64,000 bases of DNA from Neoechinorhynchus agilis. Its lineage: Eukaryota > Animalia > Acanthocephala. The position numbers and the translations under genes are program-made. The notes beneath the pieces are model-generated. The model was given only the letters and a program-made list of their open reading frames with translations, did not search any database and was not told the origin of the DNA. The stretch's first letter is position 1. Each line of letters opens with the position of its first letter. Shown here one piece after another: positions 86-29,039 of the stretch. The stretch is taken from contig CM121341.1 in assembly GCA_051530055.1 (NCBI GenBank), positions 17,834,784-17,898,783 on the forward strand, read 5' to 3'.

Positions 86-547
86 ATGAACAGCAACTTT
101 AGCAACGGCGGCAATAATTCCAGCAACCCAGAGATTCCAGTTGATCTAAGTAAAGATGTTGTTGATAACGATGAATCGGTGATTGACGAATTGGCCGACT
201 ATAGACCGAATGATCCATCTGGAGAATCTGCGGTGAAGAACACTATAAGAAGCATGCAACAGGTAATGCCGGACTGTCCAGAAGACAGCGATGCTGCCGA
301 AGTACTTGAATACACCTACATCCACCTTAAAGCGTGGACAGTTGCGCAAGCCATGATAAGACTACATAGAGGTGATGATTCAACGGAGGATGAAATTAAA
401 AAATGCGTAGAAGCCGAGAATTCAATATTCGAACATGCAATCGATGTGGTCTCAGAAATGTTTGAAGGAACGTCGTTCAACATAGGTTCGACAGTAGAGT
501 CAATGAGGCAAAGGCGTGAGGAAGCCAAAGTGAGCACAGCCAAATAA
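86..547 (+). CDS. HLH protein lacking a basic region (divergent paralog of the USF-like gene at 23814)
   Basis: 153-aa ATG ORF. VKNTIRSMQQVMPDCPEDSDAAEVLEYTYIHLKAWTVAQAMIRLHRG aligns without gaps to IREGVTRIQECLPETNAKESTSEILTRACNRLRFLNITLTMQKYLRG of the 23730 ORF. The basic-region position reads YRPNDPSGESA. Confidence 0.6.
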   Translation: MNSNFSNGGNNSSNPEIPVDLSKDVVDNDESVIDELADYRPNDPSGESAVKNTIRSMQQVMPDCPEDSDAAEVLEYTYIHLKAWTVAQAMIRLHRGDDSTEDEIKKCVEAENSIFEHAIDVVSEMFEGTSFNIGSTVESMRQRREEAKVSTAK

Positions 548-584
548 CCCGCGGGCAGTCATTAAAATTTTCTTAAGAATCAAG

Positions 585-1064
585 CTGAATCATTCACCAA
601 TTTCAGCACGTTAAATGGTTACTTAAAATCCTTTTTTGTGACGAAAGTTAAAATCGATACAATCTCGTACACTATAGAAAATATTGAAACTATCGACTTT
701 ATAGAAATACACAAATCTCATTCAACACAACAGTCGTTATGCTACATTCTAACCGTTCCGATAAATAGTCTTAATTTTGCAACGAGCAAACATTCTGTTG
801 GCATGAGCATTAGGCAAAATTCTATCCAATTGTTCCTCCGAGTGGATGTGTATTCTCAATGGCGAGTTGTAACACACTCGAGTTTTATTGAAATGAAGCT
901 TGCGAATTTTCAATGCCTCAGCCTCCTTCTCAAGCATTGTTAAAGTGTTAACTCTGCACCAAATTTTCTCAAAAATCAATCTGAATCATTCACCAATTTC
1001 AGCATATTAAATGGTTACTTAAATCCTTTTTTGGTGACGAAAGTGAAAATCGATACAATCTCGT
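585..1064 (+). repeat. ~83-nt direct repeat, 2 copies (585-667, 981-1064)
   Basis: ctgaatcattcaccaatttcagca...aaaatcgatacaatctcgt occurs twice, 396 nt apart. Confidence 0.9.
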
Positions 1065-1185
1065 GCCCTTTCAAGTGCGGATTTAACACTTTAACGATGC
1101 TTGAGAAGTAGGCTAAGGCCTTGAAAATTCGCAAGATTGATTTAAATAAAACTCGAGTGTGTTACGATTCGTTATTGAGAATTTA
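820..1185. mobile_element. Hairpin/MITE-like family M1 (arms ~820-955 and ~1081-1185)
   Basis: The arm acactcgagttttattgaa...gcctcagcctccttctcaagc has its reverse complement at 1081-1185. A second copy lies at 20202-20397. Confidence 0.75.
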
Positions 1186-2279
1186 GCAAAATGCAATGAA
1201 TTTGGGTCCAATTTCTAAGCTGAGATATTTTCCAGCAACACCAATCTAAATCGATTAACAAAATTACAATATTTCCCACATATCACAGCATCAAACAATT
1301 CATTCGTGAAATACTGTCCAAGAAACTTGCCACTTTTTTTAAATCAAATGCAGTTGAACGGGACGATTTTTTGCACGTTGATCGGATTAATGTTAAACTC
1401 GTTTGTAATAACATGAAGAGTCATTCTCTCACGACGACTCAATAAATTAAGATGCTGATAATTCATCGACCGGAATAATCGCTCATGATAGACAAGTAGA
1501 ATTCATATTACTGTAATGTGATGATTATCGATGACCTTTGTATTTTCGTAGTTTCTCGGCGAGGTAAACATGATAATTCTGATGTAAGCAGCGTCTAAGG
1601 CTTACACTAACGTTTTACTAAAAATAACCGATTTCCTAATTTTAAGATGCGTCGATTAACCTTCTAGCAGCAAAAATGCAAAATGTAGGAGGGATGAAAC
1701 TCCCGCTCCTTTGATTTTCCTCACATTATGAAGGGTAATGCAACGGGATGAATTGAAACGATTTTCAGTAAAATTTCTAGACGACGGTATTTTTCACAAC
1801 TTTATTTTATCGAATAATCAATGTTTAAATTAAAAAATGTTTATAATTTTTTTCCCTACTGTTCGATTGCAAAACTATCTTGGGATTAAATTAAAAACGA
1901 GGAATTAATAATTCGTTAATCTGTAAAAGATTATTTTCTTTTTTAATGCATCGTAGAAAAGTTAAATGGATTTTAATGAAAAAATTATAGCTTACGAAGA
2001 GACAAAAACGATTTTAAATATGAAAATCTAATGGATTTCGGGAAGGAAACATGAAATACTGTTCAGTTGGTAAAGCGGCTGAAATTCAAACTTGAAACGA
2101 AGCTGTATTATTTTTCAAAATGAAATATTGCTTATAACGCCGTTGCAAAGTTTAAGGTCTACCAGCGTTTTTAGAGAGATATATTTGAAACGAATGTGCA
2201 CGAGTTTCAAAAATGTTCTACCTCGTCGACAAAAGAGATTTTTCTTTAAATATTAGTAATAAAATACCTTCTCATGGTA

Positions 2280-2795
2280 CTACTGAGTTCCACAATTTAA
2301 CGTTCTAGCTGCAGAATTGGCCCGGTTGTTTAACCGATAGTGACGATCGATAACGTGTTGTATTTTCCGTACTAAAAGCATGACAGCGCTCCATCCGTAC
2401 GAATTTAACGGATTTCGAATGATATTCCCAACAATAACATCAAGTTGATTCTCTTTGATTTGACGTAGATTTAATCGAAGACCCAAAATCTGGTCTATAA
2501 CGTTTCGAGCAAATCGCCAATCAACGATCATGAAGCTGTCTTTTTTCATGCAGTTCTTGAGATCGACTGTAAGTCGTCCTAAAATGGATTCAGTGTATCC
2601 TTGGCTCAGATTGTGATCCATTTCAGCATCCAGAAATTCAAAACATTTATAGACCGGTATTGGTGTTGCAAACGTATTCGAATGTCTCACATATTTGCGT
2701 TTCAGTTTGCAAAACATTTGAGTAACACGTAGTCTTGATCGAAACTGTCGCCGGGTATAACGATATTCGGAGCTCGCCGTCCATGAGGTGGTCAC
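2280..2795 (-). CDS. Possible highly divergent bHLH-like ORF (may be a pseudogene)
   Basis: RRQFRSRLRVTQMFCKLKRKYV fits a basic/helix-1 pattern and PVYKCFEFL fits helix 2. The ORF starts at GTG and the first in-frame ATG lies inside helix 1. Confidence 0.35.
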   Translation of the reverse strand: MTTSWTASSEYRYTRRQFRSRLRVTQMFCKLKRKYVRHSNTFATPIPVYKCFEFLDAEMDHNLSQGYTESILGRLTVDLKNCMKKDSFMIVDWRFARNVIDQILGLRLNLRQIKENQLDVIVGNIIRNPLNSYGWSAVMLLVRKIQHVIDRHYRLNNRANSAARTLNCGTQ

Positions 2796-3242
2796 GAGTG
2801 CGGTTTAATCTAGAAGAACATTATGGCATATTTAGCATGCAGTTAAAAAATCGATGAAAGTATTGAATATCAAAAAAAATTTATAGATAAAAAATTGGGA
2901 TTAGCACCATAAAGCGAGGCCCTGTTTTTTATGTTCGCACCTTTGATTGAGTAAAGAGTGAAACTAAAAATGAAGGCTAAACTTTAGAATAAGTTCGATC
3001 AAATTGAGCGAGTGGTCTTAACGACTGCGAGCGGAGAAGCAATAAATAACGAGGTAGGCCCTATAGCGGACCTTCTAAAAACAATCCATTATGTTATAAA
3101 TGGTCTTAACATATTTTGTTGAAATATTTTATGAGGAAGCCACGCCTCGTCAGTCATCTAAAAGGATTTTAGTTGTATGGCTCAGAATGCGAATTAATTC
3201 AATCAAATATTTTTTAAGTGCTGAAGTGAACATCTTTTGCAA

Positions 3243-4075
3243 GGCTGATAATTTTTCCTTGGCCACGCAGCCCATTGATCTGGTCCAGGGAAGCGCATGA
3301 AATCACTCAATACTTTGAACCATTCCTCAAATACCTACCGAGGAGGCGGGACTCATCAGTGAGTTTCCTCCACCCTTAAACAAAATACTTCGTCCCCTTT
3401 CGTTATGAGTCATCGACAATAACGATATTGAAATCTTTGACTCTGCAAAAGGGATTCGGGGTTCAAGTCCGTTGGACCATCTTGACACAACTACGGAATG
3501 TTCAAACTCTGAAAGTTTTCATTTTTAATTCTAGACCAATGAATTTCTCTATTTTTGAAGTCGGGCCAGCAGGTAACTTTTATTCGGTATCTATCTATGT
3601 GCGGCCCTTTTCATGGCTGATAATTTTTCCTTGGCCACACAGCCCATTGATCTGGTCCAGGGAAGCGCATGAAATCACTCAATACTTTGAACCATTCCTC
3701 AAATACCTACCGAGGAGGCGGGACTCATCAGTGAGTTTCCTCCACCCTTAAACAAAATACTTCGTCCCCTTTCGTTATGAGTCATCGACAATAACGATAT
3801 TGAAATCTTTGACTCTGCAAAAGGGATTCGGGGTTCAAGTCCGTTGGACCATCTTGACACAACTACAGAATGTTCAAACTCTGAAAGTTTTAAGCATGGG
3901 CCAATCATTGAATTATTTTTATCGTTATTCCGGTTAGCCGATTACATTTATTCTCAAAGTGTTAAAGTTCGGTATGGAAGCGTAAAAAATTTACAACCTT
4001 ATGGTTCAGGGTATTTTATGCCCTTCCCTGACCAAGATCGGTGGGCTGTGTGTACCCAAGGAAAAATAATCGGCC
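3243..4075. repeat. Family M2: ~275-nt segment duplicated (period 373) plus an inverted arm at ~4020-4075
   Basis: 3243-3518 is near identical to 3616-3890. cttccctgaccaagatcggtgggctgtgtgtacccaagg is the reverse complement of the arm. A related copy lies at 22905-23035. Confidence 0.85.
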
Positions 4076-4159
4076 GTTTAAGGGATATTGTAGAGAAGTT
4101 GTTCATTTCTAAATGTGTTCTTTGGTGACTCGGATTTAAATCTTTACTAATTTATTTCC

Positions 4160-4335
4160 CTGATATTGTACCTCTCGGATAATTCCGACAGTTCAACATG
4201 TAAATTGTTTCGAGATGAATGTGAAATGTATAAAGCTGTTTTTCGCAGTGAGAGTTCGTTAGCGAAAATTGATTACAATGACAAACATTGAGAGAAAATG
4301 TCGGAATTATCCTCGAGGTGAAATATCAGAAATAT
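4160..4335. repeat. Hairpin element (family M4-like)
   Basis: tgatattgtacctctcggataattccgac pairs with gtcggaattatcctcgaggtgaaatatca. Confidence 0.6.
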
Positions 4336-4675
4336 ATTTATTATTCTCAATATATCGTCCGTCTCGTTCTTCAGGTTGCTTTCACTTCAACACTGAAAAT
4401 CACATATACGGCTACAAGTACATTGGGTAAAATAATCCAATAAAATACGTTTTATCCGAAATGTGATTATGATCACTACATCCTCAACACTACCATACCA
4501 AAGGACTTGCTGTTGCTTTTAAACAAAAGTGAAGCGTATTGGAACTGCTGTGCACGACAGAATTCACAAGAAGTCGACGTCATTGAATTTTTAGGTTTCC
4601 TCGGTCGGAGGATATTCCCTAGTTTTCAATTTTCTTGTTTTTAGCTTTTTCTAATAGCTCGAAAAAGTAATTTAC

Positions 4676-4917
4676 TGTAAAGAAATTATTCATTGTAGTT
4701 TCAGTTTCAATTAGCGATGTTTGATTTAGAAAAGTAGATTTATATTGAAAATTTTGGGCTTTTTCGTTGGCTTTCTTCAGTCAATTGTTTCGCAAGTTTT
4801 TAGCACGTTGAAGTGAAAGACTTGCGAAACAATTGACTGAAGAAGACCAATGAAAAGACCGAAATTTTCAAGATAAATCTATTTTTCTGAATCAAACATC
4901 GCTAATTGAAACTGAAA
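4676..4917. mobile_element. Hairpin/MITE-like family M3, ~240 nt
   Basis: Long inverted arms (tttcagtttcaattagcgatgtttgat... / ...atcaaacatcgctaattgaaactgaaa), flanked by the direct repeat aaagtaatttac (4664-4675, 4915-4926). Single-arm copies lie at ~42130 and ~63484. Confidence 0.8.
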
Positions 4918-5070
4918 GTAATTTACTTTGGCAAATCGAGCGTTGTTTTAAAGGGGACTATTCTATCAAACGAATTGGCAATAATATTGGATTTGACGAA
5001 TAGTGATTTTTTTCCTCCACTTTTGCGAATACCTTTTTTATATGTTTTTAAGAACCGTTTCGAAGCTTCA

Positions 5071-6739
5071 ATGTCCTGGACAACCGAGCAAATCGAGAGT
5101 TTGTCCCTTGTCAGCACTTTGTATACAGTTCATGGTGAAGAAGGCGAGGTATCGAGTGCGGATGAATGCGATGATCTTCTTGTACATACGACGGAATACT
5201 ATCGATCCAGACCGAATTGTTTTCCCGCAGTAAGACAAATCGATTTTTCACCTTGTGGACAGTACTTTGCTTCAGCTATCGCAAATGGACACATAAATGT
5301 ATATGATGTAGAAGAGCCCAGTCGATCGGTAAACAACGTAATGTGTCTAAAATATGGAGTAGGCAACGTCAGGTACATTCGGGCCATCCCATCAAACAAC
5401 GATCAAGTATACCATTCGTCCACTAAAGTCAATAATGATATTCGTCTTCTAAACATACAATCTAACAAATACGTTCAATATTTTAAAGGTCACAGCGATT
5501 TAGTCGTCAGTCTAAACACTTCTCCGACCGATGATATTTTTGTTAGCAGCTCTTTAGATTCATCAGTGAGATTGTGGGATAGACGGTCGTCTCAAAGCAC
5601 CAGTTCTATGATGATAAGAAAAGCCGGTCTATCCTCCTTCTCGCGTTATCTTGTCTACGATCGATTTAGTATTTGTGCGTTCGATGGTACGGGACAAACC
5701 ATTGCTGTCGCATCCGGATCCGTTTCTCTGAAGTTATTTGATATAAGATATCTTCATTCTTCGGAATGTATCGACCAAATCACCTTGCCTAATGTTAGCC
5801 GAGAGCTCAAAATAGAGCCTGGTGCATTGTGCTTTTCTTCTATTGAGTAATTCCGGGTAGACTCGTGGCGGTGGTCTAATTATCATTTAATTGTCATTGA
5901 ATGGAGACTGTCAAAAAGATTGCCAATATCTTTTTAAATCAATAATCTCGAATTTTAATCATAAAACAATATTATTCGGCATCGCATACTCGAATTGTAG
6001 TATAAATTCGTTTTATCTTGCTCGGAACAATGATTATCTATTTTAACTTGATCGATTTTTCGAGTCTTGTCCCGTTTTATACAGCCCAAATAACAAGATG
6101 ATATCCATGAATCGATCAGATGGTCTTGTGTATCTGATAGGTCTATCAAATGAAAATCGATGCGCTTCTGTGATCGATGTATATGACGTTGTTCGTGATA
6201 ATCCGTATTATTCCCTTAAATCGATTATTGATAATTGTAGCCGGTTATCATCTAAAACTGGCAAATCGACAAGCAAGTGGCATTGCGACTGCATTGTTTG
6301 CCTTCCCCAACAAACAGTATCATCATTTAGTCCTGATTCAAGGTTTCTACTTTGTCCAACATATCCAAATGGACTTATATGCTACGACGTACAAAACAGA
6401 CAGACCGTGGGAAATTTTGCCACGCTCGGTCGTGTTCGAATGTCTCTATTTCACCCAAAACTTGCATTGGTTATAACATCGAACAGGCATCTTTCCTTCT
6501 GGGCACCGGGAAGTAAGCCCTCCGCTCTTATTGATGAGAATCTTAAATCGATGATTAAGCGATCAGGCGACGTATCACCGTCGCGTTTTAATAAATCCAT
6601 CGTAAAAGAAAGACAAACTGAAACTGTTCCACAATACAACGAGAAACAAATGATTGCCATCGAGGGAAAAAGAAAATCTAAGGAGATAGAATGCTTAGGA
6701 TCGGTGCTGTCTCCTATTGTTGAGGAAGATGCTTCTTAA
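5071..6739 (+). CDS. WDR82: WD40 protein WDR82/Swd2; exons 5071-5846 and 6085-6739
   Basis: IDFSPCGQYFASA, YHSSTKVNNDIRLLNIQSNKYVQYFKGHSDLVVSLNTSPTDDIFVSSSLDSSVRLWD, LKLFDIR and SFSPDSRFL match WDR82. The GT-AG intron 5847-6084 joins the two ORFs in frame. Confidence 0.88.
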
Positions 6740-6869
6740 AAATATACGGGTACTCTATTCATCTAAATGCTTAAAATTTGCCAAATTAAACTTCAGAGAT
6801 CAATTTTGTGTATCTCTTACACAATTTTTGAATTATTCTGCACTACTTGATACACTTGGGCGAGCTGTT

Positions 6870-8092
6870 GTAGCTCGCTCAAGGCATTACCCAGCAGCAC
6901 ACAGTATCACCGGGTGTAGAGTTCCTGGGAAGACTAAAGGCGCGAATACAGAATATAGAATGATTCCTGCTGATTTCAAGTCCTTATTCACATAAGTGCC
7001 ATTGGAATCAGCGATCAACCTTACGATTCCTATATTCCAACGCGATGTAGAAGGATGGAATTTAACGATACCTGAATAGAAGGAACTTTTAAACATGCGC
7101 ACGAGGAATACGAATTTCAACATCGAAGGTAAGAACTATGATCAAGTTGATGAATTATCCATGAGTCCTCTTGCCTCAGTTTTCACCGAATTGCTCATGT
7201 GCGATTGTGAGGCCAAGTATGTATTCAGCCTACCGTTTGTCAAATTCTGGCAGAGATACGTAGATAATACTTTTATCTTAATTGACAAATCCACAGAGAT
7301 TTCAGTTGATATCGCAAACCATGCCATAAAAATATAGCCAAGCATCGAGATTTCCATCATCTTTTTGGTCGACGAAGCAGGCAATTTATGCTGCTGATAC
7401 ACGCAGGGCAGCAATGATTTGCTCATCGCCATTAAAGGAGAAAAGAATGAATATTTGCGTAACGAGATCATGCGTTTCAGCGGCGGTGTGATTCAAGAGA
7501 GAAGAAACGGAAAAATGATCTATCACGGAATCGATATGAAGGAAAACCGGTTCTCAGGATTCCATATATCAGTAAAAAGGTCACTAGTGACGCTCGAAAG
7601 CTCTTGTGACTATAGAGAATGGATGCCCGGATTGTCAACGGAAGCGCACCTACACTTAAGCGAGTTCTGGCGAGAACTGGACATCATGAAACGCCGGAAA
7701 CAAGTCCAGCATCGTCCTTGATGTGTACGCAACCGAGAAGTCAGTCGCGAGTTCATCTATAAACAGGCAAAACTCAGCGTCATTTGATTGAACATTTGAC
7801 GGAACACGTTTGTAATGCACTGAATCCGGACGAAAAATCATGGCCACGCCATGGACAAAGCACCACTCACGGGGCCACGATGGCGGAGAATAAAACTCTA
7901 CGCCAGTTAGGTTTGAAGCCAAGTATCCGTTGGAATTATCTATCACCGCAGCACAGCTTATATTTCGAGCGGTTTGAAGGCGACGATGTTTCCGTAGACA
8001 ATACGAACAAGAATTCTGGACGTCCGCTCGACAGAGCCCCAGAACTGCTCAACAAGCGAGACGAACTTTCCGCTTCGATGTCGTTAATTTAA
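6870..8092 (+). mobile_element. Degenerate Penelope-like element (RT plus C-terminal endonuclease region)
   Basis: YDQVDELSMSPLASVFTELLM...KFWQRYVDNTF resembles the PLE RT motifs. LGLKPSIRWNYL and LLNKRDEL resemble the PLE C-terminus. Frameshifted. Confidence 0.65.
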
Positions 8093-8349
8093 AGTACTTC
8101 ACATGCCGTAAGACGGCGAAAGCTTGAAAATAAAGTCTCTTTATCATTGCAACAGCTATTCCAAGTTTCGATTTAAAAACCGTTGTTTGATTGGAAAAGG
8201 GATCGTGTAATGCAATATTCTTTATCGTTTCATTCGCGGTTGTTATGCTTCCATCAAAGAAGGATTTTTAAGCTTATGCTGAGGAAACCTTTAATGTGCT
8301 CGAAAATAAAAAGGCGCCGTACTTTCCCCTCTCCTCTTTGACATTTTTC

Positions 8350-9240
8350 TAAATGGCCTTCATCCCCTCATACCCCCTACCAAATATTTTCTCTATGCCG
8401 ATGACCTCACAGTCATTACCATCGCATCTCCCTCTCTCCCTCTCCACAACCATGGACGAGCTCAACCATCTCATTTCCTCGCTCTCCACCCTAAACCTCT
8501 CCCTAAATTTATCCAAATCTTTTGAGCTTGTCCCCCACATTTCCAAACGCAACCTTATCCCCGCGCCTCTCCCTCTCCCCCTCCAACACTCCTCTTCTCT
8601 CCGAATACTGGGCCTGACTTTCCAAGAAAACCCTAAATGGTATGCCCACATTTCATTTACCCTCTCTAAAGATAATCCTCGTCTTTACCTCCTCAAACTC
8701 CTCCGGCGTCGTGTTGTATCCCCTTAACACCTTGCCCACTTTTATCTCTCTGCCATCCTCCCTATCCTTACATACGCCTTCCCCGCTTTCCTCGCCCTTT
8801 CCACCAATGCTCTCCATTCCCTCAAAACCTTCCACAAGAGAGCAGCGAAAATATGTGGGACTTCACTCCTCCCCTCGACGCCCACCTCCTCTCCATTTTC
8901 TCCAAAAACGCCCTCCGTCTTCTTCAACCCCCTCCACAATTTTCTTCTTTCATCTCTAAATACTCTTCCTTCGTAAACACCCGTAACCCCAACCTTTTTC
9001 ATCCCCCCTCGCTCGTACGACCCTCTACCAAAAATCTTTACTCCCCCAAACCAATCTTTCCTTAATAACCAGAGAACAAGGAAAGACTCCTAATCTGTCA
9101 TTCTCCTGTAAAACTCCTTCAAAGATAAGTCCCACCTCCCTGCCTCAACATCCGACATCCAGACACCTTCAGCAAAGATAGATGCTGGCAAGTGTATGGA
9201 TCGTTCTTTTCTTAAATTAATAAAACGTGTTTATATAAAT
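8350..9240 (+). mobile_element. 5'-truncated L2/CR1-group non-LTR retrotransposon (RT C-terminus and 3' UTR)
   Basis: LYADDL, LNLSKS, LRILGLTFQENPKWYAHI, RLYLLKLLRR; AATAAA near 9220. Strongly C/T-rich strand. Related copies at 29040 and 61908. Confidence 0.85.
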
Positions 9241-9291
9241 ACAAACCGAGACGCAATTTTTTATTAAATAGAAGTCAATATATTAAGTTTG

Positions 9292-10518
9292 CTATCTTCC
9301 TATTCCAAAACGATAATCATGCTTCTTATTCTTACCTGATGGTGAAACGGCATCCGGTAGGATATCCGGATTCAAAAAGTCATATGTTCCATTATTCACT
9401 ACAAACAGTACATTTGTATAATATGGTGATATAGAGAACGTGAAATTCCTTTCGGGTAAATTATTCCCTATGAGATTCAATACTTGCAAATCTTTCAATA
9501 GCGAAAATGCATTATTGGGAATTGTCTGTAACAGGTTACTCGAGAGATCTAACCATTTGAGTCTTTGCCAGAGTTTGAAATCGTTTTTTCGCACCGTTCC
9601 GATCAAATTAAATGCAACCGAAATATTATGAATTGTTAAATTAGTTAATCGCCCTCCTCGAGGAAATACTATAAGATTTCCGTCAATCAGCTCGAGTGCT
9701 TTCAGATTACTCAAATTCTTTAGCCGGGACGCGTCGAATTTTCGGTTTAACGACCGTTTTATTGTTACCTTCTCAATGCTGGAAACTTTCTGTAATTGAT
9801 TCATTTCAGACGCAATAGGACCATTTAACGAAAACTTAATCTCCCTCAGGTTTGTTAAATCCGCTCCGTCTTCGATTTCTAAGTATTGAATGGGATTGTT
9901 GAGCGCAGTTATTTTTGTTAGTTCGTGAAAGCAATTTTGCCTTGTGAAGTGCAAAGCATTGAGCTTATTGTCATCAATGTTCAATTCCTTTAGAAAACAG
10001 AATTCTCTGAATTCGTCAAGAGTGATTAGGGCGTTTCCTTCAAGATCAAGTCTTTGCAATAACGGCAACTTTTGACCCAGGTCTGTTCTCAAATGTGAAA
10101 CAAAAGATCCCTTCACATACATTTCTTTCAAAATCAAAATTTTTTTCGCTCCAATTGATTCTATGTTCATGTTTTCCAAATGTAAAATTTCAATACTTTC
10201 TGCAAAGTCAAGAGTAACGTTCGAGCACTTCTCTGCATAGTCGACGATCGATAGTTCATGCAGGTTCGGAAATATTTTATTAACTTCAAATTGAACTTCT
10301 TCAATCGATACTTGAAATAAGAATAATTTTAGGACTTGCCGTTTTTCAAATTCATTGAATACTTCATATAACCCATTTCTGCTATAATCCTCATTTCCGC
10401 ATTTTATAAATGCAGAATCCCTTACGTGAAACAATTTGCTGCATTTTCTGACTTGATTGGCATTTATTAATTGAAGTAAAACGAGAATGAATAACATTCC
10501 GAATATCGTCCTCATCAT
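9292..10518 (-). CDS. Secreted/extracellular leucine-rich repeat protein
   Basis: Signal peptide MMRTIFGMLFILVLLQLINA and LxxLxLxxNxL repeats (LQRLDLEGNAL, LKWLDLSSNLL, LQVLNLIGNNL). A strong AG|GTAAG donor at 9335 has no identified downstream exon. Confidence 0.85.
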   Translation of the reverse strand: MMRTIFGMLFILVLLQLINANQVRKCSKLFHVRDSAFIKCGNEDYSRNGLYEVFNEFEKRQVLKLFLFQVSIEEVQFEVNKIFPNLHELSIVDYAEKCSNVTLDFAESIEILHLENMNIESIGAKKILILKEMYVKGSFVSHLRTDLGQKLPLLQRLDLEGNALITLDEFREFCFLKELNIDDNKLNALHFTRQNCFHELTKITALNNPIQYLEIEDGADLTNLREIKFSLNGPIASEMNQLQKVSSIEKVTIKRSLNRKFDASRLKNLSNLKALELIDGNLIVFPRGGRLTNLTIHNISVAFNLIGTVRKNDFKLWQRLKWLDLSSNLLQTIPNNAFSLLKDLQVLNLIGNNLPERNFTFSISPYYTNVLFVVNNGTYDFLNPDILPDAVSPSGKNKKHDYRFGIGR

Positions 10519-17477: not shown

Positions 17478-17749
17478 TGACTGAGCGTATTTAAACTAAA
17501 ACTAAAGCGCAAAGTAACTGGATTATCATCACATCAGTGAATAAACGTATTTAAAGGCCTTTATCAACGAAAAATTACTTGCACCCTAGGGATGCGATGA
17601 TGAAATAATAAATTTAATTCAATTTTCGAGAAATATTTCTTCAGATTTTCAACTGAACGCTCGTTCCCCTTACAGCTCGTCACTCATCGGAACACGAATT
17701 TTCAATTCGCTCCCGGACTTATCTCTTTTGGATAATCAATCCTTTAAGA

Positions 17750-19699: not shown

Positions 19700-19800
19700 C
19701 TGAAAATTCCACTTCTACATAAGAAAATTATGCGCATTTTGCTGCCATTCGTAACAGCCTACAAATTCGAGACGGTTTTTTCGCAATGGCAACCATCAGA
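19700..19800 (+). mobile_element. hAT (Charlie/Buster-like) transposase C-terminal fragment
   Basis: MRILLPFVTAYKFETVFS resembles the hAT dimerisation motif ILLPFxTTYLCExxFS. Confidence 0.5.
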
Positions 19801-20201
19801 TCAAAATTACGGAACCGTATTGTACTGGAAGCAAGTATTCGATGTGTCGTGTCAACGATTTAAATTCGGATATAAGAAATTGTGCAAAGGAAGCAAGCTC
19901 AGCAGTCACCTTAATCAGGCGATGATCGTAGCTACAAACTAATATACCAATGGACTCTAGTTGCCTGATGATGGAAAAAAGGTGCTCTACTGCTTCATTT
20001 ATCGTTTTTTGTAATGTTTGCCTAAATCATACCATTAAATTAATTGTACTAAGAACAGGAGTTTTCTAAGGTGGGATCGTCATCGGATACCAATTTTGGG
20101 TCGTGACCACAAAAAGGTTGAAAACGGCTAATGTAGAGGAACTACGACAGTATGTACACGACATGAAACCTCTTCTCAATTACGATCAACAAAAAAGTTT
20201 A

Positions 20202-20397
20202 CTCTCAATGGCGAATTGTAACACTCGAGTTTTATTGAAGTCAACCTTGCGAATTTTCAAGGCCTCAGCCTCCTTCTCAAGCATCGCTTGTAGGTTTTAA
20301 AACGCCTTGAAAATACGAAGGTTAATTTCAATAAAACTCGAGTGTATTACAATTCGCCATTGAGAATACACATCCACTCGGAGGAACAATTGAATAG
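20202..20397. mobile_element. Family M1 hairpin inserted in the Helitron relic
   Basis: Inverted arms, flanked by the direct repeat aaaaaagttta (20191-20201, 20399-20409). Confidence 0.8.
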
Positions 20398-20941
20398 GAA
20401 AAAAGTTTATGATTATATTACAAAAGCCAAGGCACAAGTTTCACAAACGTGCAAGGTTGTTGTGTGGCCTTCGGAGTACTTATAAACTTACGAAGGAGCC
20501 TCGGTGCTCTTAGCTGGTGACCCGAGACAAACGCTTCCAGTCATAAACTAGTCAACAATTGCTGGCGAAATTAATTCTTTCCTGAAGGCCTCAGCGCTTT
20601 GGAGACATGTTCAAACACTTCCGCTATATACAAATTAGCTTTGAAATGAAATTCCTGACGTATAGTTTTACATTTGCTCAATTCTTTTTCCCTGCGTATA
20701 GAACACTGAACAACGGTAATAACCGCAATTTAGCTCTCCCAACTTACTCATACTTTCTTCTAATAATCGAGTTCTTGAAAAGATCAGTTTCTGGGTAGAA
20801 TTTAGTACATTTGCTTTAAGCCTAGTTTACTATTCCTAAATAAAAATCGTCACATAAAACTACTTTAAAGAAATGACAAGATTATTAAGCGATCCCTTAT
20901 TAAGAACGGTAACAAAATCACGAAATGTTTATTTCGGATAT

Positions 20942-21725
20942 TTATTCATCGAAGTTCGTATTCATTTCATCGTTTGAGGATTTATCCCTTGAGCAGCATA
21001 AAATATCATTTTGATTGTTAAATATCGGACACTGGTCAACAACTCTATTAGGATTCCATCTTCCAACAGAAGCATCTATTTTGTCGTCCTCATCGACTAA
21101 AAATGCATCAAAAGGCGGAAATTCTTCATTTAGGCTAAGCTTCATCAATTCATTCGAACTTCGGCATTCTTTGTACCTCGTAAGCCGTTCTTCATTAATA
21201 CGAAAAAACTCTACTCCCCATCCGAATTCATTTAACACTTTTTGGGACTGAGAAATGAAACCTGTATTAATATCATTTTCCGAAAATTAAACTATTTGTG
21301 TTTTTACCATTACCTGTTAGAAAGAGACCTGCTGCGAAGGCTTCAGCACATGATAGTTTCGAAGGTTTTCCATAATTCGTTGGATTTGCAGCAACAAGAT
21401 ATGGCAGTTTTCGCAAATGAAGTTGTCCGAGTGTTCGTAACCTTTGATCACCTTCCATGGCCTTCCAACTAGAGTCAAGAGTAGCCAAACCACTGGAATT
21501 AACAAACTGTCGGTCTTCACGACAAAGGTAAACCTCAGTGTCATGGTAAAGCATAATGCCACGAAACCCATTCGAATTTTTCATTTTTCGTACGACGCCT
21601 CGTCTACAAAGTCGCTCAGCCGTGCACTTTGAAGGATCGCATTGGTTGAAGCAAATAACGCGTAGAGAAACTTCATTCTGGGTTTTCGTCGATCCATTAC
21701 GATCCTTGTGTTTCCAGTAAAGCAT
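20942..21725 (-). CDS. TSR3: 18S rRNA aminocarboxypropyltransferase; exons 21725-21314 and 21261-20942
   Basis: CFNQCDPSKCTAERL, LDSSW, LRKLPYLVAANPTNYGKPSKLSCAEAFAAGL, EFGWGVEFFRINEERL. The 52-nt GT-AG intron 21262-21313 restores the frame. Confidence 0.95.
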
Positions 21726-21894
21726 ATCTACTCATGAGAGAAGAAAATCGATTAGGAAGGCAAAGCGATTAAATCACGAGCCAGATTTGACTTTGCATCG
21801 CTCAGTCGGTTCATTACAACTACGATATTGTTTGTCCAATCTATCCTTGTGATTTTCCTTCCAAAGAGAGAGGCAAAGAATTTCAAAATCACAC

Positions 21895-22175
21895 TTTCGG
21901 TGAAAATAATCCCGGTCATGACCTATTTGATTTATTTAAGATATTTCGCGAGGTAACCTAGCCTCATCTGGTACTTTCGGTCTTCCAACCATGAAGCTGA
22001 TTGTCGAGATCGAGTCAATTTCATCGAAAATCAGGTGGAATTGAGGTATATCATGGAGAGAAAATCCTTCGGGGTGATAAAGTTTGAATTTTGGTGATAA
22101 TAATTTAGGATAAAAAATATTCTATTGGTGTGAAATATCTTTTATTCGGGATTATCATCACCACAATTCAAAGAT
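21895..22175. repeat. Degenerate palindromic element (family M4)
   Basis: Internal inverted repeats. ggtgaaaataatcccgg...tatttgatttatt..agatatttcgcgaggtaac is shared with 55190-55265 on the opposite strand. Confidence 0.6.
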
Positions 22176-22904
22176 TAAGATATATTTGATTTGTTGAGAT
22201 TAAGAATGTTAATCCTCTCGCTGCATTGGACATGACTGCAAGTTCACGAGAAAAACTTTGATATGGTTTTTCTTACGTGCCAGACAGTTTAATCTGCAAT
22301 TCCATTATCCTACGTAAAGCAAATTATTAATCGACATGATTTTAAATTAAATGTTCTGATATGGAATTTAAGAAGGATAATACATCACGGGTGGCATACT
22401 CACATTAAAATCGAGCAATAAATCTCATATATTTGATGGTTTCTATTGTATGCAATACGAAGAGGATACTAGAGGACAAACGTTTTGTTTGATTGATTGC
22501 AATTATTTCAATCTGCTTTTATGTATTAAATTAGTACTAACACGATTTTTTTATTTGCATCGATCCATGATATGTTTTAATTCCATTTATTTAACATCGC
22601 ACAAGATTGTAAAGGAGCCTCTACCTATCAATAATCTTATAAATCCCATAAACCTGTTCATTTCAACTGCTGCAAGAAACGTTACTGTAAAAAAGGTTCG
22701 ATTACTGAAATTTGCTCGCTATTTCGTTAAGAAAGTGACGGTTGGTACTAGATTTTGGGCCGCGTGAAGTTCGCGATCTCTTGTCAAAGTCAATTGCCGC
22801 GTGAACTTTTTACGCTATAATTTTTTAATTATCGATCAACGGGCGGCTTCCCTACATTTGCACAATGTATGGAAAAACCGCGGAACTTATTATGTTTTAT
22901 TTTT

Positions 22905-23035
22905 TAAACTCTGGCCAGCCGGTAACTTTTTTTCTGTGTCGGTGTGCCCTTTTTCCCGGCGGATGATTTTCCTTGGGCACACAGCCCACCGATCTTGTCC
23001 AGGGAAGCGCATGGAACCATACGGTTATGAGTTTG
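22905..23035 (+). repeat. Dispersed copy of family M2
   Basis: ggccagccggtaactttt...ccttgggcacacagccc...tccagggaagcgcat matches 3565-3670. Confidence 0.75.
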
Positions 23036-23199
23036 TACGCATCCCTCCGGATCCTCAGATACCTCCAGGATTCTGGATTTTTTTCCAGATTGAAAGTAGA
23101 AGTAGCGATCACTTTGAACCAAATAAGTTAGGTAATTCAATTTTAGGGAATTTCTAGACGAAATCGATGATTAGTACAGTCCAAAGAACTATTGATAAT

Positions 23200-23321
23200 A
23201 TTAATTATGATGGTGAACTGAAGGAAAAAATTATGAATATATTAATCAGAATTTTCGACCAATGCGTTGGTCTTATTCATTGATTCATAATTTTTTCCTT
23301 CAGTTCACCATCATAATTAAT
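23200..23321. repeat. Perfect 39-bp inverted repeat with 44-nt spacer
   Basis: 23200-23238 is the exact reverse complement of 23283-23321. Confidence 0.95.
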
Positions 23322-23813
23322 TCCTAAATGAATATCTACACAAAATTGATAATAGTTTACACCCTTCAACGTGGAGATATCAATATTGCGGCTACATTTC
23401 AAACGCTAATGATAAGTGTAATAAATCAAGGAGAAAAATGAACTAATCATCGATCGGAGATAAAAATCCGTAAATTGACGTCATATGTGTAATTTCCTTT
23501 TTCGGCAATAAAATTGATAATGGTTTACACCTTTCAGCGAAGAGATATCAATATTTCGGCTACTTTGTAGAAGATCTCTAAGGGATTATTAAACGCAGTT
23601 GAGCGTCATTAATTTCCGTTTCGAATTGCGCTTCCATTAGTTATTCAAGTCTATTGATTTATTTAATGCGACCCTGATCGATAAATTAATTTATGATAAG
23701 ATCCCATTTAAGCATAAAGTGTATAATTAGTGCAGCCAATCAGCGTTAAGAGATTCTCTTGCACCAAATATAGATCGAGTGTTTCCAATTTTCTCTGTTA
23801 CTCACTAACAAAC

Positions 23814-24779
23814 ATGAGATACGCTTCGAACGAAATGATGAACAGATATATCAGACCCGAGATGAACCCTAACGTTAATCAACAGCATGGAAACTATCAA
23901 CCAAGGAACATATCAAACGGAAATAACCTCGACGCGGCACCAATACAACGAATGCATTCGGGAGCACATGTCAGACTTGCTCAAATAAATCCTGGTCAAA
24001 TGTATCCTGTGGTAACCCCAAGGCCCTTTCGACGAGATGTTAACGAATATAGGGTACGCTACCAACCACCAATCCGTATGAACCCTAGATACCCAAATGC
24101 AACAAGAGCAAGCTACAATTGCCGTGAACCCAATGCTCAGCCTTATCTACAAACTTCAAGCCAACAATTCGATATGCCACCTGCACGTGTTCCACAAGAT
24201 ACTCCCGAGGAAGTTGAATATCTTCCTGAAGCTCAGTCATATTATCTGCCAGATAACGCGATGGGAATACCACAAGAGAGTTTTGACTTTCCGCCATTTG
24301 ATGTAGAACCCGATATATTTCCAGTCAATCGTCAATCTTCACCTGTAAATAGAAACGAAAGCCACAATCAAGTGGAAAAGAGAAGAAGAGATAAAATACG
24401 GGAAGGAGTCACTAGAATACAGGAATGTTTGCCTGAAACAAATGCGAAGGAATCAACAAGTGAAATCTTAACTAGAGCTTGCAATCGATTGCGGTTTTTA
24501 AACATCACGTTAACAATGCAAAAGTATTTACGAGGGAAACCGTTAAGTGTCTTTGAACAAAAAAATTTAAACGAATGCTCAAATCTAGAATATGAAAATT
24601 CGCTCAAGATGAATTTTGAGTTGTTTAATGAGATTCAACCCTCAATTTTCTATTACAGTTACCAAGATATGATGGATCGTCGGTACAGAAAAAGACGATC
24701 TCAAGAAGATGTCAACCTCCAGCAAGACGATGACCAGCAGTTCAGATACTCTCCAAACAAATTTCAAAGACGGCATTAA
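23814..24779 (+). CDS. USF-like class B bHLH transcription factor, apparently intronless
   Basis: RNESHNQVEKRRRDKIREGVTRIQECLP...SEILTRACNRLR has the H-E-R pattern, and the N-terminus is P/Q-rich. First ATG at 23814. Confidence 0.85.
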   Translation: MRYASNEMMNRYIRPEMNPNVNQQHGNYQPRNISNGNNLDAAPIQRMHSGAHVRLAQINPGQMYPVVTPRPFRRDVNEYRVRYQPPIRMNPRYPNATRASYNCREPNAQPYLQTSSQQFDMPPARVPQDTPEEVEYLPEAQSYYLPDNAMGIPQESFDFPPFDVEPDIFPVNRQSSPVNRNESHNQVEKRRRDKIREGVTRIQECLPETNAKESTSEILTRACNRLRFLNITLTMQKYLRGKPLSVFEQKNLNECSNLEYENSLKMNFELFNEIQPSIFYYSYQDMMDRRYRKRRSQEDVNLQQDDDQQFRYSPNKFQRRH

Positions 24780-26238
24780 GTGCCACATGTCACACTTTTT
24801 GTTAAATATATTAAAATTTAATTAATTTATGTTTGTTATTTGATTTAGCAGCAATATACGCATTGATGAATTAAGCTAGCGTTATGCAATTGTTTTCACA
24901 ATTAAGATGAATAATCGGAAGCAAACGATAACATAATGGTGCATGCTACTGGCATTTCACTAATTTGTTTCCCATCAAGTAAAATTTCGCACTGTCTTAA
25001 AATACCGGTAATTAAATTATGCATGATTTTAAGCTTTAATTACAGTGGTTCATATCAAAAGTGAAAAGATCAATTTTGAAAATATGGGCAGCAGTATAAC
25101 CCTTTGTCAATTTAATTTAATCACATCGTAAAACCTAAATACGATAAAAATTAATCACGATCATAAAATCAAATCAAGCTTTTTGGCTAAATGATTAATA
25201 AGACCCTGCAGAATTTTTGACTTCTATACCGGCTTAGTAATCAATCAAAAAAAATGCATAGCGGATTGATAAGAAAATCAAGATTTATGTCGAATTATCT
25301 GCCTTTACTGATTAATGCGATCAATCAAAATTGATATTGTTTTTTAAGTGTGCTGCGTGAAATTCAAAAGATGATTAAAAGGCACTAATGATGTTGTATT
25401 CCAAAAGTATGTCTTATACTTAGAATTTAAGCATAATCTCTAGTAGTTTGTCGTGCATACCAAAATGGCTAAATCGCGTACAATTCGACGTGGATGCTCG
25501 TCTAAAGCTAATTGAAGTCTGGAAACCCAATTTTTTCACAGTTTATCGTGAAAATAAACAAAGTTAGTCTGTTCACCTTCACTTTAAGTTACGAATAAAA
25601 ATGGACTATTTTATGAATTATTTGCAAAACTCAATTGTTCATGACACGCTTGTTCATTTATTAAACCTCTTAAGCATTATAACCAACAATTATGAAACTA
25701 TATAACCGAATCCGGCCAAAAGGGTACTTCAGTTTCAGCGATCGTGCTATAGGTTCCAAACTTCGTTGTTTCCTAACTTTTACGTGCCTGGGTTTGCTTT
25801 AATTAAAATAAAAGGATATATTTTATCCCTGGTATCGAAAAATGGATGATATTGCTTGAGGGAAATATCTTTAGGTCAGCACTGACTTCAATGGCATTTT
25901 AAAGTTACTATCCGGTTCGATAATAAATAGACTTAATTTTTGACTCAGTATCGAACTAATCTTACATGAGAAATCTTTCCGATAGCGTTAAATCCTCAAT
26001 CATTGCAAATTTACTAAGCATAAATCATAGAATTTATTCAGCGAAATATCATTTTACTCGTATCAAAAGGTTTAAATCAAATAAAACTGAATCACTTTTC
26101 CTGTTGAGAACGAAAGCATACTTTTAAAAATGCAACAAACACACAATCGACGTCACTGAGCAATATTTAAATAAGTATCAAATATATACGTTTTGTTGAA
26201 TCGTGATTTTTTAATAAAAACTGCACTACGAACATTCA

Positions 26239-26715
26239 ATGGAAAGGCATGAACGAGAAATCGAAGAGGTATGGAAAGTTGCAGTTGAAAACTATAATAA
26301 TAACATACGAAAACGATCAACAAGGAAAACCCAAACTGAACGACAAAGAAGAGAAAGATGTGTAAAGATTTTGCGCGATCTTGGACGGGAGTTACCCGCT
26401 TTGACCATGGAAACTTCATGCGAGTGCTTTCTTCAACGAACGTTCAATCACGTTAGACAATGGAAACTTAACTGCATTTTATTGAAACTTGTTTTTAAAG
26501 GCAAGCTGAGTGAACTTGAATGTAAATATTTCGTCTCAGCTGAGGGATATGAGATTGAGAAGGCAATTGGGCGGATCAAGATGGAATATAGCAACCTACC
26601 AAAGATTTATTACAAAAATTTGAGTTCACTTAAGCACAAGTGGAATTGTTGGAACAAGAGTAGATCGATGCCCGTATTTAAGAAACGGCCTCCAGGAAAG
26701 TGTAGGCGAAAATGA
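26239..26715 (+). CDS. Divergent bHLH protein, paralog of 23814
   Basis: TERQRRERCVKILRDLGRELP...FLQRTFNHVR...KGKLSELECK aligns without gaps to the 23814 bHLH and its C-terminal extension. Confidence 0.65.
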   Translation: MERHEREIEEVWKVAVENYNNNIRKRSTRKTQTERQRRERCVKILRDLGRELPALTMETSCECFLQRTFNHVRQWKLNCILLKLVFKGKLSELECKYFVSAEGYEIEKAIGRIKMEYSNLPKIYYKNLSSLKHKWNCWNKSRSMPVFKKRPPGKCRRK

Positions 26716-29001: not shown

Positions 29002-29039
29002 TTTAATTAGGAACATCGCAATCAAGAAGAGTAAATGAA

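Follow-up and report, generated by a model that had tools for sequence, protein, structure and literature searches.

In the Max/Myc/Mxd system of bHLH proteins, long effector-bearing members pair with the short protein Max, which has little beyond a dimerisation and DNA-binding module. Zipper, Orange and PAS domains shape partner choice in other bHLH classes, the Orange domain being the one that modulates it in Hes/Hey, and the group D proteins Id and Emc act through heterodimerisation. Group B bHLH proteins have K/H-x-R at sites 5-8-13, and group D is defined by an HLH without a basic region (PMC2258200). In lophotrochozoans, lineage-restricted new bHLH families have been described that arose largely from local duplication and are clustered (Bao et al. 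2017, PMC5381572).

We analysed a stretch of 64,000 nt (the window) of the Neoechinorhynchus agilis chromosome CM121341.1; the genome of this acanthocephalan has a GC content of 36%. An earlier note on this DNA had placed intronless bHLH paralogues at positions 86, 23814 and 26239. All three ORFs are present there, on the + strand, and the annotation, which used RNA-seq hints to call them as genes, gives each a span equal to its CDS length; the three genes go unmentioned in the N. agilis transcriptome paper. Their positions in the window are as follows.

86 to 547, + strand: ORF1 (P0003), annotated single-exon gene of 153 aa, HLH without a basic region followed by the post-HLH family domain
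23814 to 24779, + strand: ORF2 (P0001), annotated single-exon gene of 321 aa, canonical group-B bHLH followed by the post-HLH family domain
26239 to 26715, + strand: ORF3 (P0002), annotated single-exon gene of 158 aa, short and most divergent member, basic region kept

ORF3 follows ORF2 after 1.46 kb in the same orientation, and ORF1 and ORF2 are separated by unrelated genes. The account that we favour, and consider on balance probable by a small measure, is that these ORFs belong to a species-restricted family of bHLH paralogues with a dimerisation network of activator, partner and inhibitor.

Sequence comparison identifies ORF1, ORF2 and ORF3 as true paralogues, that is, as very divergent copies within the bHLH family. 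The alignment, previously put at about 57 aa without gaps, was found to be ungapped over about 97-100 aa, with pairwise BLOSUM62 z-scores of 5.5-6.6 and the real score reached by 0 of 20000 shuffles. In phmmer searches among the 657 window ORFs, the best non-self matches of each of the three were the other two. Leave-one-out HMMs made from two sequences recovered the third ORF at E = 1.2e-7 (ORF1), 3.1e-5 (ORF2) and 7.7e-7 (ORF3, from the profile of ORF1 and ORF2), whereas the next window ORF was found only at E about 0.5. Shuffled controls, named beforehand as a possible refutation, gave at most 10.8 bits for the best of 2000 shuffles compared to 22.6-28.5 bits for the real sequences. Furthermore, in leave-one-out profiles of seven copies of the family compared with shuffles, the HLH and the post-HLH part were each significant alone in every window ORF. 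Identity is only 14-19%, and HLH identity between members only about 24%, with the hydrophobic core columns conserved. The strings at the basic position, YRPNDPSGE (ORF1), HNQVEKRRR (ORF2) and KTQTERQRR (ORF3), had been read correctly, and the motif M..xxRG / KG..LS..E.K was found after helix 2 as described. A weaker fourth candidate, at 2280-2795 on the - strand, showed no family similarity (E > 10 with a six-sequence profile) and no Pfam match, and was rejected as unrelated. The part of it from 2280 to 2717 is an annotated 145-aa gene.

Relatives were sought exhaustively, with a profile, across 1.84 billion representative proteins. Besides the window ORFs, the only full-length relatives found were P0004, P0005 and P0006 (E = 7e-15 to 7e-12). 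These three come from N. agilis and are named as hypothetical proteins, and no orthologues in other species were found among these 1.84e9 proteins. The family comprises at least seven genes: three in the window, three others on this chromosome some 550 kb upstream (two annotated genes and one unannotated copy, the seventh) and one on another chromosome. The seventh copy sits between two of the other relatives (locus L003). The paralogues are part of a family of at least seven and not a single locus of three or four genes. The proposed lineage specificity was borne out as far as the representative proteins show, N. agilis being the only species in which the bHLH subfamily has been seen to date.

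The profile and basic-region comparisons indicate that the family derives from group-B (USF/Max-like, CACGTG-type) bHLH proteins. Pfam HLH was matched by four of the six members searched (ORF2, P0004, P0005 and P0006), and the sequences of both ORF2 and ORF3 have the group-B combination of K/H-x-R and E9. The best PDB match of the family profile was USF2 (8ia3; E = 4.4e-9, 39.7 bits), with USF1 (1an4) at E = 1.5e-6 and Max as the third-best relative at E about 2.5e-6. The basic region is nearly identical to that of USF, HNxVE[RK]RRRDKI with H5-E9-R13, and the P-x-C end of USF helix 1 (IIPDC) has counterparts in ORF1 (VMPDC), P0004 (VLPNC) and P0005 (VLPGC). The family loop is shorter than that of USF, the alignment to which requires a 5-residue insertion, and is similar in length to that of Max. 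On the bHLH alone, the USF1 bHLH-only construct scored 31.6 bits and Max 31.0 bits; USF and Max are therefore equal in this respect, and orthology of the family to either is at most putative.

It might be argued that the ORFs belong, as very fast-evolving orthologues or co-orthologues, to a known group-B family, either USF or Max/Mlx, the extension being an eroded zipper or a known C-terminal domain. In keeping with this, the alignment to USF2 reaches the zipper region up to profile position 84, yeast Cbf1 (a USF-like bHLH-zip protein) aligns over positions 2-111 (E = 0.022), there is heptad-like hydrophobic spacing for about three turns right after helix 2, and acanthocephalans have fast-evolving, strongly reduced genomes, in which 45% of the metazoan BUSCO genes are absent. 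However, in USF the leucine zipper is continuous with helix 2, whereas in the N. agilis family helix 2 runs on only about three more turns and is broken by a conserved Gly (then a Pro in ORF2) about 11 residues past the HLH, after which AF2 predicts three separate helices. An extension-only profile matched no zipper protein in the PDB, where nothing but a designed helical protein was found, and Pfam gave no accessory domain in any of the six members. The extension HMM also found nothing in human MLX at E <= 1000 (Z = 1; provisional MLX sequence), which speaks against the dimerisation and cytoplasmic localisation domain (DCD) of Mlx/Mondo as its source; the PDB set searched contains no Mlx structure, and the family bHLH scored 26 bits on the same MLX sequence, below USF and Max. 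Together with the equal standing of USF and Max on the bHLH, these findings make such an origin unlikely in our view.

We conclude that a conserved domain, about 55 aa long and predicted to be helical, takes the place of the leucine zipper and is a previously undescribed hallmark of the family; the claim of a shared novel segment that is not a USF-type zipper was upheld by the Gly/Pro break, the separate AF2 helices and the absence of Pfam and PDB relatives. A short basic tail resembling a nuclear localisation signal usually comes after the domain, and the proteins end about 60-90 aa past the HLH. Their N-termini are of low complexity and do not align to each other. The architecture of bHLH, short linker and small helical domain is analogous to that of bHLH-Orange proteins (Hes/Hey/Dec-CWO, group E), but membership in that group was rejected: there was no Hairy_orange match at E <= 10 in the six members and no relevant PDB match for the extension, and the family sequences have neither a Pro at basic site 6 nor a C-terminal WRPW/YRPW. 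The bHLH-PAS proteins (group C) were likewise rejected, as there were no PAS matches, and Foldseek matches to CLOCK covered the bHLH only, longer alignments having an rmsd of 8.6-10 Å.

ORF2 is the member with the canonical features, which are positioned as follows.

23814 to 24356, + strand: N-terminal region of ORF2 rich in N/Q/P/Y/R (aa 1-181), ending in the acidic-hydrophobic stretch ESFDFPPFDVEPDIFPV
24363 to 24389, + strand: basic region HNQVEKRRR of ORF2, with H5, E9 and R13
24390 to 24533, + strand: helix 1, loop and extended helix 2 of ORF2 (aa 193-240)
24534 to 24701, + strand: post-HLH family domain of ORF2 (aa 241-296), beginning at the G-K-P break

The Pfam HLH (PF00010) match of ORF2 had E = 6.9e-9 and 35.8 bits, compared to a cut-off of 20.7, and its post-HLH part scored 29.5 bits in leave-one-out comparison, a score reached by 0 of 1000 shuffles. 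Its closest paralogue is P0006, with 36% core identity. The AF2 model of the core (pLDDT 87.8, pTM 0.72) has five helices, of which those of the HLH span residues 2-24 and 35-59 (pLDDT 85-93) and those of the post-HLH part residues 66-74, 77-91 and 103-115, with the break at residues 60-65. In Foldseek, the bHLH part superposed on the CLOCK bHLH with an rmsd of 0.9-1.5 Å over 45-54 columns. No Pfam domain was found in the N-terminal region, which may be an activation region.

ORF3 was found to have the following features downstream of an N-terminus of only about 27 aa.

26326 to 26352, + strand: basic region KTQTERQRR of ORF3, with K5, E9, R10, R12 and R13
26497 to 26667, + strand: post-HLH family domain of ORF3 (aa 87-143), the least well supported of the three

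In the seven-copy comparison, the HLH of ORF3 scored 9.1-11.5 bits and its post-HLH part 8.6-15.7 bits, and in both cases the score was reached by 0 of 1000 shuffles; an extension HMM built solely from the out-of-window copies missed the ORF3 extension. ORF3 had been described as a form of altered specificity, for which the basic region gives no ground, K5, E9 and R13 lying within the standard group-B K/H-x-R.

ORF1 is the basic-less member, with these features.

200 to 226, + strand: degenerate, non-basic stretch YRPNDPSGE of ORF1 (residues 39-47), equivalent to bHLH sites 5-13
227 to 370, + strand: helix 1, loop and extended helix 2 of ORF1 (aa 48-95), based on the alignment
371 to 535, + strand: post-HLH family domain of ORF1 (aa 96-150)

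That this stretch is non-basic, as first reported, is clear from its composition: the 16 aligned residues contain 2 K/R, 3 D/E and 3 P/G, whereas the five copies that keep E9 have 5-9 K/R and 0 P/G in the same 16 residues. With Y5, D9, E13, two Pro and one Gly, ORF1 falls outside the group-B definition. In the AF2 model, the basic-equivalent stretch is coil, helix 1 begins only at residue 44, the HLH helices span residues 44-60 and 70-95 (pLDDT about 90) and the post-HLH helices residues 101-108, 112-125 and 137-152. The ORF1 monomer model was not recognised as an HLH by Foldseek; therefore, the HLH status of ORF1 comes solely from its sequence homology to the paralogues. In the seven-copy comparison, the HLH scored 10.8-14.6 bits (reached by 0-1 of 1000 shuffles) and the post-HLH part, the best-conserved portion of ORF1, 35.5 bits (0 of 1000 shuffles). 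An extension-only HMM made from the four out-of-window copies matched ORF1 at E = 8.4e-10. The loss of the basic stretch combined with the conservation of the extension argues for selection on interaction surfaces and not on DNA binding.

ORF1 resembles Id/Emc proteins in that helix 1, loop and helix 2 are kept and an acidic Pro/Gly stretch replaces the basic region, but it differs from them in having the family post-HLH domain and in being closest to two group-B-like paralogues, P0004 (24% core identity) and P0005 (19%). Descent from the Id/Emc clade was rejected because the only relatives of ORF1 detected are its group-B-like N. agilis paralogues and there was no Id protein among the PDB matches of the family profile. 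ORF1 would be a basic-less HLH protein that arose independently, by convergence.

The divergence of ORF1 and ORF3 could also mean that one or both are pseudogenes or over-predicted genes, duplicates that are decaying or have no function. Only ORF2 and the copies with a good basic region would then be functional transcription factors, and there would be no network. Neither has a Pfam HLH match at E <= 10, and ORF3 has no Pfam match of any kind at this threshold; the in-frame codon-usage signal of ORF3 was 0.098, below that of three other frames, and thus absent; and identity is extremely low (14-19%). Clustered at 90% identity, ORF1 and ORF3 are each the sole member of their cluster in the searched collection, on one contig, which is this genome. 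The seventh copy, which lacks E9, has no in-frame ATG ahead of the HLH and is unannotated, indicates that decay happens in the family. Against this, ORF1 and ORF3 have intact frames of 153 and 158 codons, respectively (the three ORFs range from 153 to 321), whereas chance would give only about 0.16 stop-free runs of at least 153 codons in the window as a whole. The codon-usage signal of ORF1, 0.208 in frame, exceeded all 1849 intergenic controls and was the strongest of the ORFs tested, and its extension is conserved at the score given above. A gapless alignment of about 100 aa at 16-19% identity with the hydrophobic core positions kept supports the protein-coding status of the ORFs, since neutral decay with indels would not keep such an alignment. 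Taken together, we regard decay as quite improbable.

With the ORFs read as functional paralogues, a network of activator, partner and inhibitor is plausible. The members would dimerise via the four-helix bundle that their HLHs form, and the post-HLH domain peculiar to the family would add to or restrict partner choice. ORF2, with H5-E9-R13 and a low-complexity N-terminus of 180 aa that ends in an acidic-hydrophobic stretch, would be the DNA-binding, activator-type member. ORF3, with K5-E9-R13 and nearly no N-terminus, would bind DNA as a short partner or competitor; it is like Max in its size and missing N-terminal region, although the N. agilis family is without a zipper and the likeness to the Max/Myc/Mxd network would be a functional analogy. 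ORF1 would be an independently evolved Id/Emc-like inhibitor, forming dimers unable to bind DNA. The CACGTG sequence was not enriched in the window (5 sites compared to 7 expected), which gives no hint of autoregulation.

Alternatively, the paralogues could be functional in the absence of a common network, as homodimers or with unrelated partners, and the extension could have another role, for example in localisation, stability or the binding of cofactors; in that case, ORF1 may work via its extension alone and not as an Id-like inhibitor. The better conservation of the extension than of the HLH, both in ORF1 (35.5 vs 14.6 bits) and in the seventh copy (21.8 vs 2.6 bits), suggests that it may function independently of HLH dimerisation, and an HLH identity of about 24% could suffice to alter partner specificity. 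However, ORF1 still keeps the hydrophobic positions of the HLH core, and the basic-less group D proteins that have been studied, Id and Emc, act by heterodimerisation. We consider the absence of a network very doubtful.

The N. agilis genes stand beside the orphan bHLH clusters of lophotrochozoans, as an instance of the same evolutionary phenomenon in the Acanthocephala (Syndermata), whose gene set is drastically reduced. The N. agilis family differs from those clusters in having its own accessory domain and a basic-less member.

Three open frames of the window, all on the + strand, were found where an earlier note on this DNA had placed them, and its statement that they are intronless agrees with the annotation, in which each is a single-exon gene whose span equals its CDS length. 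The same note had proposed a weaker fourth member at 2280-2795 on the - strand; this candidate was rejected because it gave no score with any family profile and has no Pfam domain.

ORF1: 86-547, + strand, 153 aa, annotated single-exon gene, span equal to CDS length
ORF2: 23814-24779, + strand, 321 aa, annotated single-exon gene, span equal to CDS length
ORF3: 26239-26715, + strand, 158 aa, annotated single-exon gene, span equal to CDS length
Gene at the rejected fourth candidate: 2280-2717, - strand, annotated, 145 aa, no Pfam domain, unlike the HLH family

The annotated start of ORF2 is the ATG at 23814, and its longest open frame begins with a GTG at 23730. ORF2 and ORF3 adjoin each other, 1.46 kb apart, and ORF1 lies 23 kb upstream; unrelated ORFs and genes stand between, including those for the 145-aa protein and for WD40, LRR, GPR158-like and TSR3-type proteins.

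Pairwise BLASTP matches between the three proteins were marginal (E = 2e-5 and 3e-4, with the third pair not significant). With phmmer, the top two non-self matches of each ORF among 657 window ORFs (stop-to-stop, at least 40 aa) were the other two, and a profile made from two of the sequences recovered the left-out ORF at E = 1.2e-7, 3.1e-5 and 7.7e-7, the next-best ORF being at about 0.5. The real score of the left-out ORF was 22.6 to 28.5 bits, versus a maximum of 10.8 bits in 2000 shuffles, so that the similarity withstands the shuffled controls named in the earlier note. The gap-free alignment, which had been claimed for about 57 aa, is indeed ungapped and extends over about 100 aa, with BLOSUM62 z-scores of 5.5 to 6.6. 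The similarity of ORF1, ORF2 and ORF3 is real.

Representative proteins, 1.84 billion in all, were searched exhaustively by HMMER with a three-sequence profile. Besides ORF1, ORF2 and ORF3, the full profile including the part after the HLH was matched only by P0004, P0005 and P0006 (E = 6.8e-15 to 7.3e-12), all from Neoechinorhynchus agilis (N. agilis) and named hypothetical protein by NCBI; the remaining matches, ten in total at E <= 1e-3, were bHLH-only or spurious repeats. The family thus exceeds the window. These relatives surfaced in the exhaustive search only: word-indexed protein searches with ORF2 and with three- and six-sequence profiles returned the window's own proteins alone. The genes for P0004 and P0005, a divergent pair, are on the chromosome of the window, some 550 kb upstream of it (and absent from the 10 kb upstream of its edge); in both, the gene span is 43-50 nt longer than the CDS, which implies a single short intron. 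The P0006 gene, on chromosome CM121342.1, has no intron. When these loci were scanned with a six-sequence profile, a further copy, the seventh and one that the annotation lacks, came up between P0005 and P0004 (L003, the upstream locus, 6769-7338, - strand, E = 1.9e-10; CM121341.1 at about 17.29 Mb, between ACOME3_004145 and ACOME3_004144). In this copy the glutamate E9 is missing, and the HLH is preceded by no in-frame ATG. Conservation is good in its post-HLH domain (21.8 bits), and its HLH is degenerate (2.6 bits). Either the annotation missed a gene that has an upstream exon joined by splicing, as in both neighbours, or the copy is decaying. For six of the seven genes the only annotation label is 'hypothetical protein'. 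Over the core, identities among members are 14-36%, with the exception of P0004/P0005 (50%). By this measure ORF2 groups with P0006 (36%) and ORF1 with P0004/P0005 (24% and 19%), and ORF3 is equally distant from every other member.

The segment after helix 2, a conserved stretch of about 55 aa that we call the post-HLH domain or extension, is not a zipper. Beyond the HLH, helix 2 keeps a heptad-like spacing of hydrophobic residues over no more than about three turns, as far as a helix-breaking Gly that is present in six of the seven copies and is followed by Pro in ORF2, which bears out the earlier view that the extension is unlike the USF zipper. In a seven-copy leave-one-out test, the post-HLH columns alone scored 35.5 bits in ORF1, 29.5 in ORF2 and 15.7 in ORF3, and none of 1000 shuffles equalled these values; in ORF1 and the seventh copy the post-HLH part was more conserved than the HLH. 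An extension profile built from the out-of-window copies alone found ORF1 (8.4e-10) and ORF2 (0.007) and left ORF3 undetected. The presence of the domain is thus beyond doubt for ORF1 and ORF2, and less well supported for ORF3. The N terminus of ORF3 (HEREIEEVWKVAVENY; window 26242-26340, residues ~2-33) also gave a weak second match to the family profile at positions 78-109, the post-HLH part that contains GYEIEKAIGRIKMEY of ORF3 itself; either a small duplication within ORF3 or chance may account for this.

Known accessory domains were considered as the identity of the extension. Orange and PAS were ruled out, as Pfam at E <= 10 gave no match to these or any other known accessory domain in the family. 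The basic region of P0006, AHNQAEQRRRDKIK, which we take to resemble that of Mlx, was the origin of the idea of a Mlx/Mondo DCD; the extension HMM had no match in a provisional human MLX sequence, and this identity was tentatively rejected. Against PDB sequences the extension-only profile had one match, to a helical protein designed de novo; the E values of 1.8 and 84 for its stretches are not meaningful. At the C terminus, most members carry a short tail rich in K/R (KKRMRF, KKRRFK, FKKRPPGKCRRK, RRYRKRRS) that looks like a putative nuclear localisation signal.

Pfam HLH was matched by ORF2, P0004, P0005 and P0006; ORF1 and ORF3 did not match it even at E <= 10. The closest solved relatives of the family profile were USF2 (4.4e-9), USF1 (1.5e-6) and Max (about 2.5e-6), followed by SREBP, CLOCK/BMAL1, MITF and Myc. 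On the strength of these profile matches we class the family as group-B bHLH, USF/Max-like; because USF and Max are equal in score on the bHLH alone, it is not assigned to USF. The definition of group B asks for K/H-x-R at sites 5-8-13 (PMC2258200). ORF2 has H5-E9-R13 and ORF3 has K5-E9-R10-R12-R13; the ORF3 basic region is therefore still within the group-B definition, and the altered specificity previously suggested for it has no evidence in these residues. ORF1 reads YRPNDPSGE at sites 5-13, and its 16 aligned residues include 2 K/R, 3 D/E and 3 P/G; in the five copies with E9 retained the count is 5-9 for K/R and zero for P/G. The description of ORF1 as non-basic thus stands, and in having an HLH but no basic region ORF1 resembles group D.

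A confident AlphaFold2 model of the ORF2 core, built with the six-sequence alignment (pLDDT 87.8, pTM 0.72), has the basic region and helix 1 at 2-24, a loop, helix 2 at 35-59 and a break at G-K-P, followed by three helices (66-74, 77-91 and 103-115). In a Foldseek search with the whole core, the bHLH part superposed on the CLOCK bHLH (rmsd 0.9-1.5 Å over 45-54 columns), and the part beyond it had no match in known structures. The ORF1 model (pLDDT 73) has the helix order of ORF2, with residues 1-36 disordered, coil at the positions that align with the basic region, and helix 1 beginning at residue 44. Foldseek returned nothing credible for this model and did not recognise it as an HLH, so the structural support is confined to topology.

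Several observations count toward these being functional genes. The frames are open for 153-321 codons, versus about 0.16 stop-free runs of at least 153 codons expected in the window; indels are absent over about 100 aa although identity is 16-19%; hydrophobic core columns are kept in the family alignment; and all three ORFs are gene calls in the RNA-seq-hinted annotation. The in-frame codon score of ORF1 was higher than that of all 1849 intergenic controls. This codon-usage test, which has a small training set (2329 codons) and a weak bias to work on, was informative for ORF1 alone. The lack of a codon-usage signal in ORF3 counts against its function. The N. agilis transcriptome paper makes no mention of bHLH genes, transcription factors or locus tags.

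The composition of the window is eukaryotic (about 36% GC, few ORFs, a satellite array and retrotransposon pieces), and the ORF2 protein is encoded on CM121341.1 (19.4 Mb) of GCA_051530055.1, from an eoacanthocephalan parasite of fish. The published N. agilis genome is 46.2 Mb in three major contigs; 13,655 genes were predicted by BRAKER with the help of mRNA-Seq hints, and 44.7% of the metazoan BUSCO set is missing (PMC12690905). The satellite, at 42513-48103 (about 5.6 kb, 93-bp unit), was resolved by TRF into separate arrays with up to 43 unit copies, matches of 77-84% and a higher-order period of 186/187 bp, and has G in large excess over C on the + strand (GC skew +0.18 to +0.33). Two 2-kb blocks with strong, opposite GC skews, 8001-10000 (-0.32) and 28001-30000 (+0.30), flank the LRR gene region and a Pex19-like ORF (28543-29001); no tandem repeats scoring at least 150 were reported within them. 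Non-LTR retrotransposon remnants lie on the + strand at 52200-54423 (an endonuclease-like ORF with a weak match, then RVT_1 at E = 6.6e-24) and 37384-38516 (a shorter RVT_1 fragment, E = 1.4e-8). A 321-aa ORF at 35018-35983 (+) has 2.7 tandem copies of a 216-bp (72-aa) S/T/P-rich repeat, followed by a hydrophobic stretch resembling a transmembrane segment, and no Pfam match; its product may be a mucin-like parasite surface protein. A GH31 alpha-glucosidase gene on the - strand (56054-57520 and 58287-59570, two long exons with a gap of about 770 bp; Glyco_hydro_31 E = 1.4e-72) is presumably of the glucosidase II alpha type, an ordinary housekeeping gene.

Taken together, the paralogy and the family description hold with near certainty. 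The paralogy, the architecture and the basic-region states are established; beyond them we propose a dimerisation network. The proteins would dimerise through the HLH, and the private helical post-HLH domain would extend or restrict the dimer interface, by likeness to other bHLH classes in which accessory domains act on the interface. ORF2, with a long N/Q/P/Y-rich N terminus ending in an acidic-hydrophobic stretch, would be a DNA-binding effector on CACGTG-type E-boxes; ORF3 would be a short form still able to bind DNA, comparable to Max; and dimers with ORF1 would be incapable of binding DNA, making it an Id-like inhibitor of independent origin within a group-B lineage. Enrichment of CACGTG in the window, which might have hinted at autoregulation, was looked for and not found (5 sites versus 7.0 expected). 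These roles of the three ORFs are tentative, with the chances leaning against them, and the explanation as a whole, description and network together, we hold to be slightly on the probable side. A further reading, which we think rather doubtful, is that a gene-poor parasite, many of whose conserved metazoan regulators (a large share) are lost, has built a private bHLH dimerisation system. A post-HLH interaction domain that is new and without relatives elsewhere would define it, and it would consist of long forms that bind DNA, a short form like Max, and ORF1 as a convergent Id-like inhibitor; if true, the Myc/Max/Id logic would have been re-invented independently from a USF/Max-like ancestor.

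The classification of bHLH proteins goes by the module after the HLH (zipper, Orange, PAS or COE), since this part determines which proteins pair. An accessory domain carried by seven very divergent paralogues and having no detectable relative would add a new bHLH architecture. HLH inhibitors without a basic region are a known class, in which ORF1 would be a clean animal case independent of Id/Emc. In lophotrochozoans, local duplication is well known to have generated lineage-specific bHLH families (PMC5381572). What is new is the accessory domain itself, the basic-less member of independent origin inside the family, and a private expansion in a phylum marked by regulator loss. There is also a practical point for annotation, as the HLH nature of ORF1 and ORF3 is unrecognisable by Pfam. 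Our literature search found no relevant paper linking Acanthocephala to bHLH genes, and the acanthocephalan transcription-factor repertoire is explicitly unsurveyed (PMC12256650). About 45% of conserved metazoan genes are absent from acanthocephalans, and the losses are enriched in regulatory genes (PMC12256650, PMC12690905). A private bHLH expansion runs counter to this trend and could relate to parasite-specific development.
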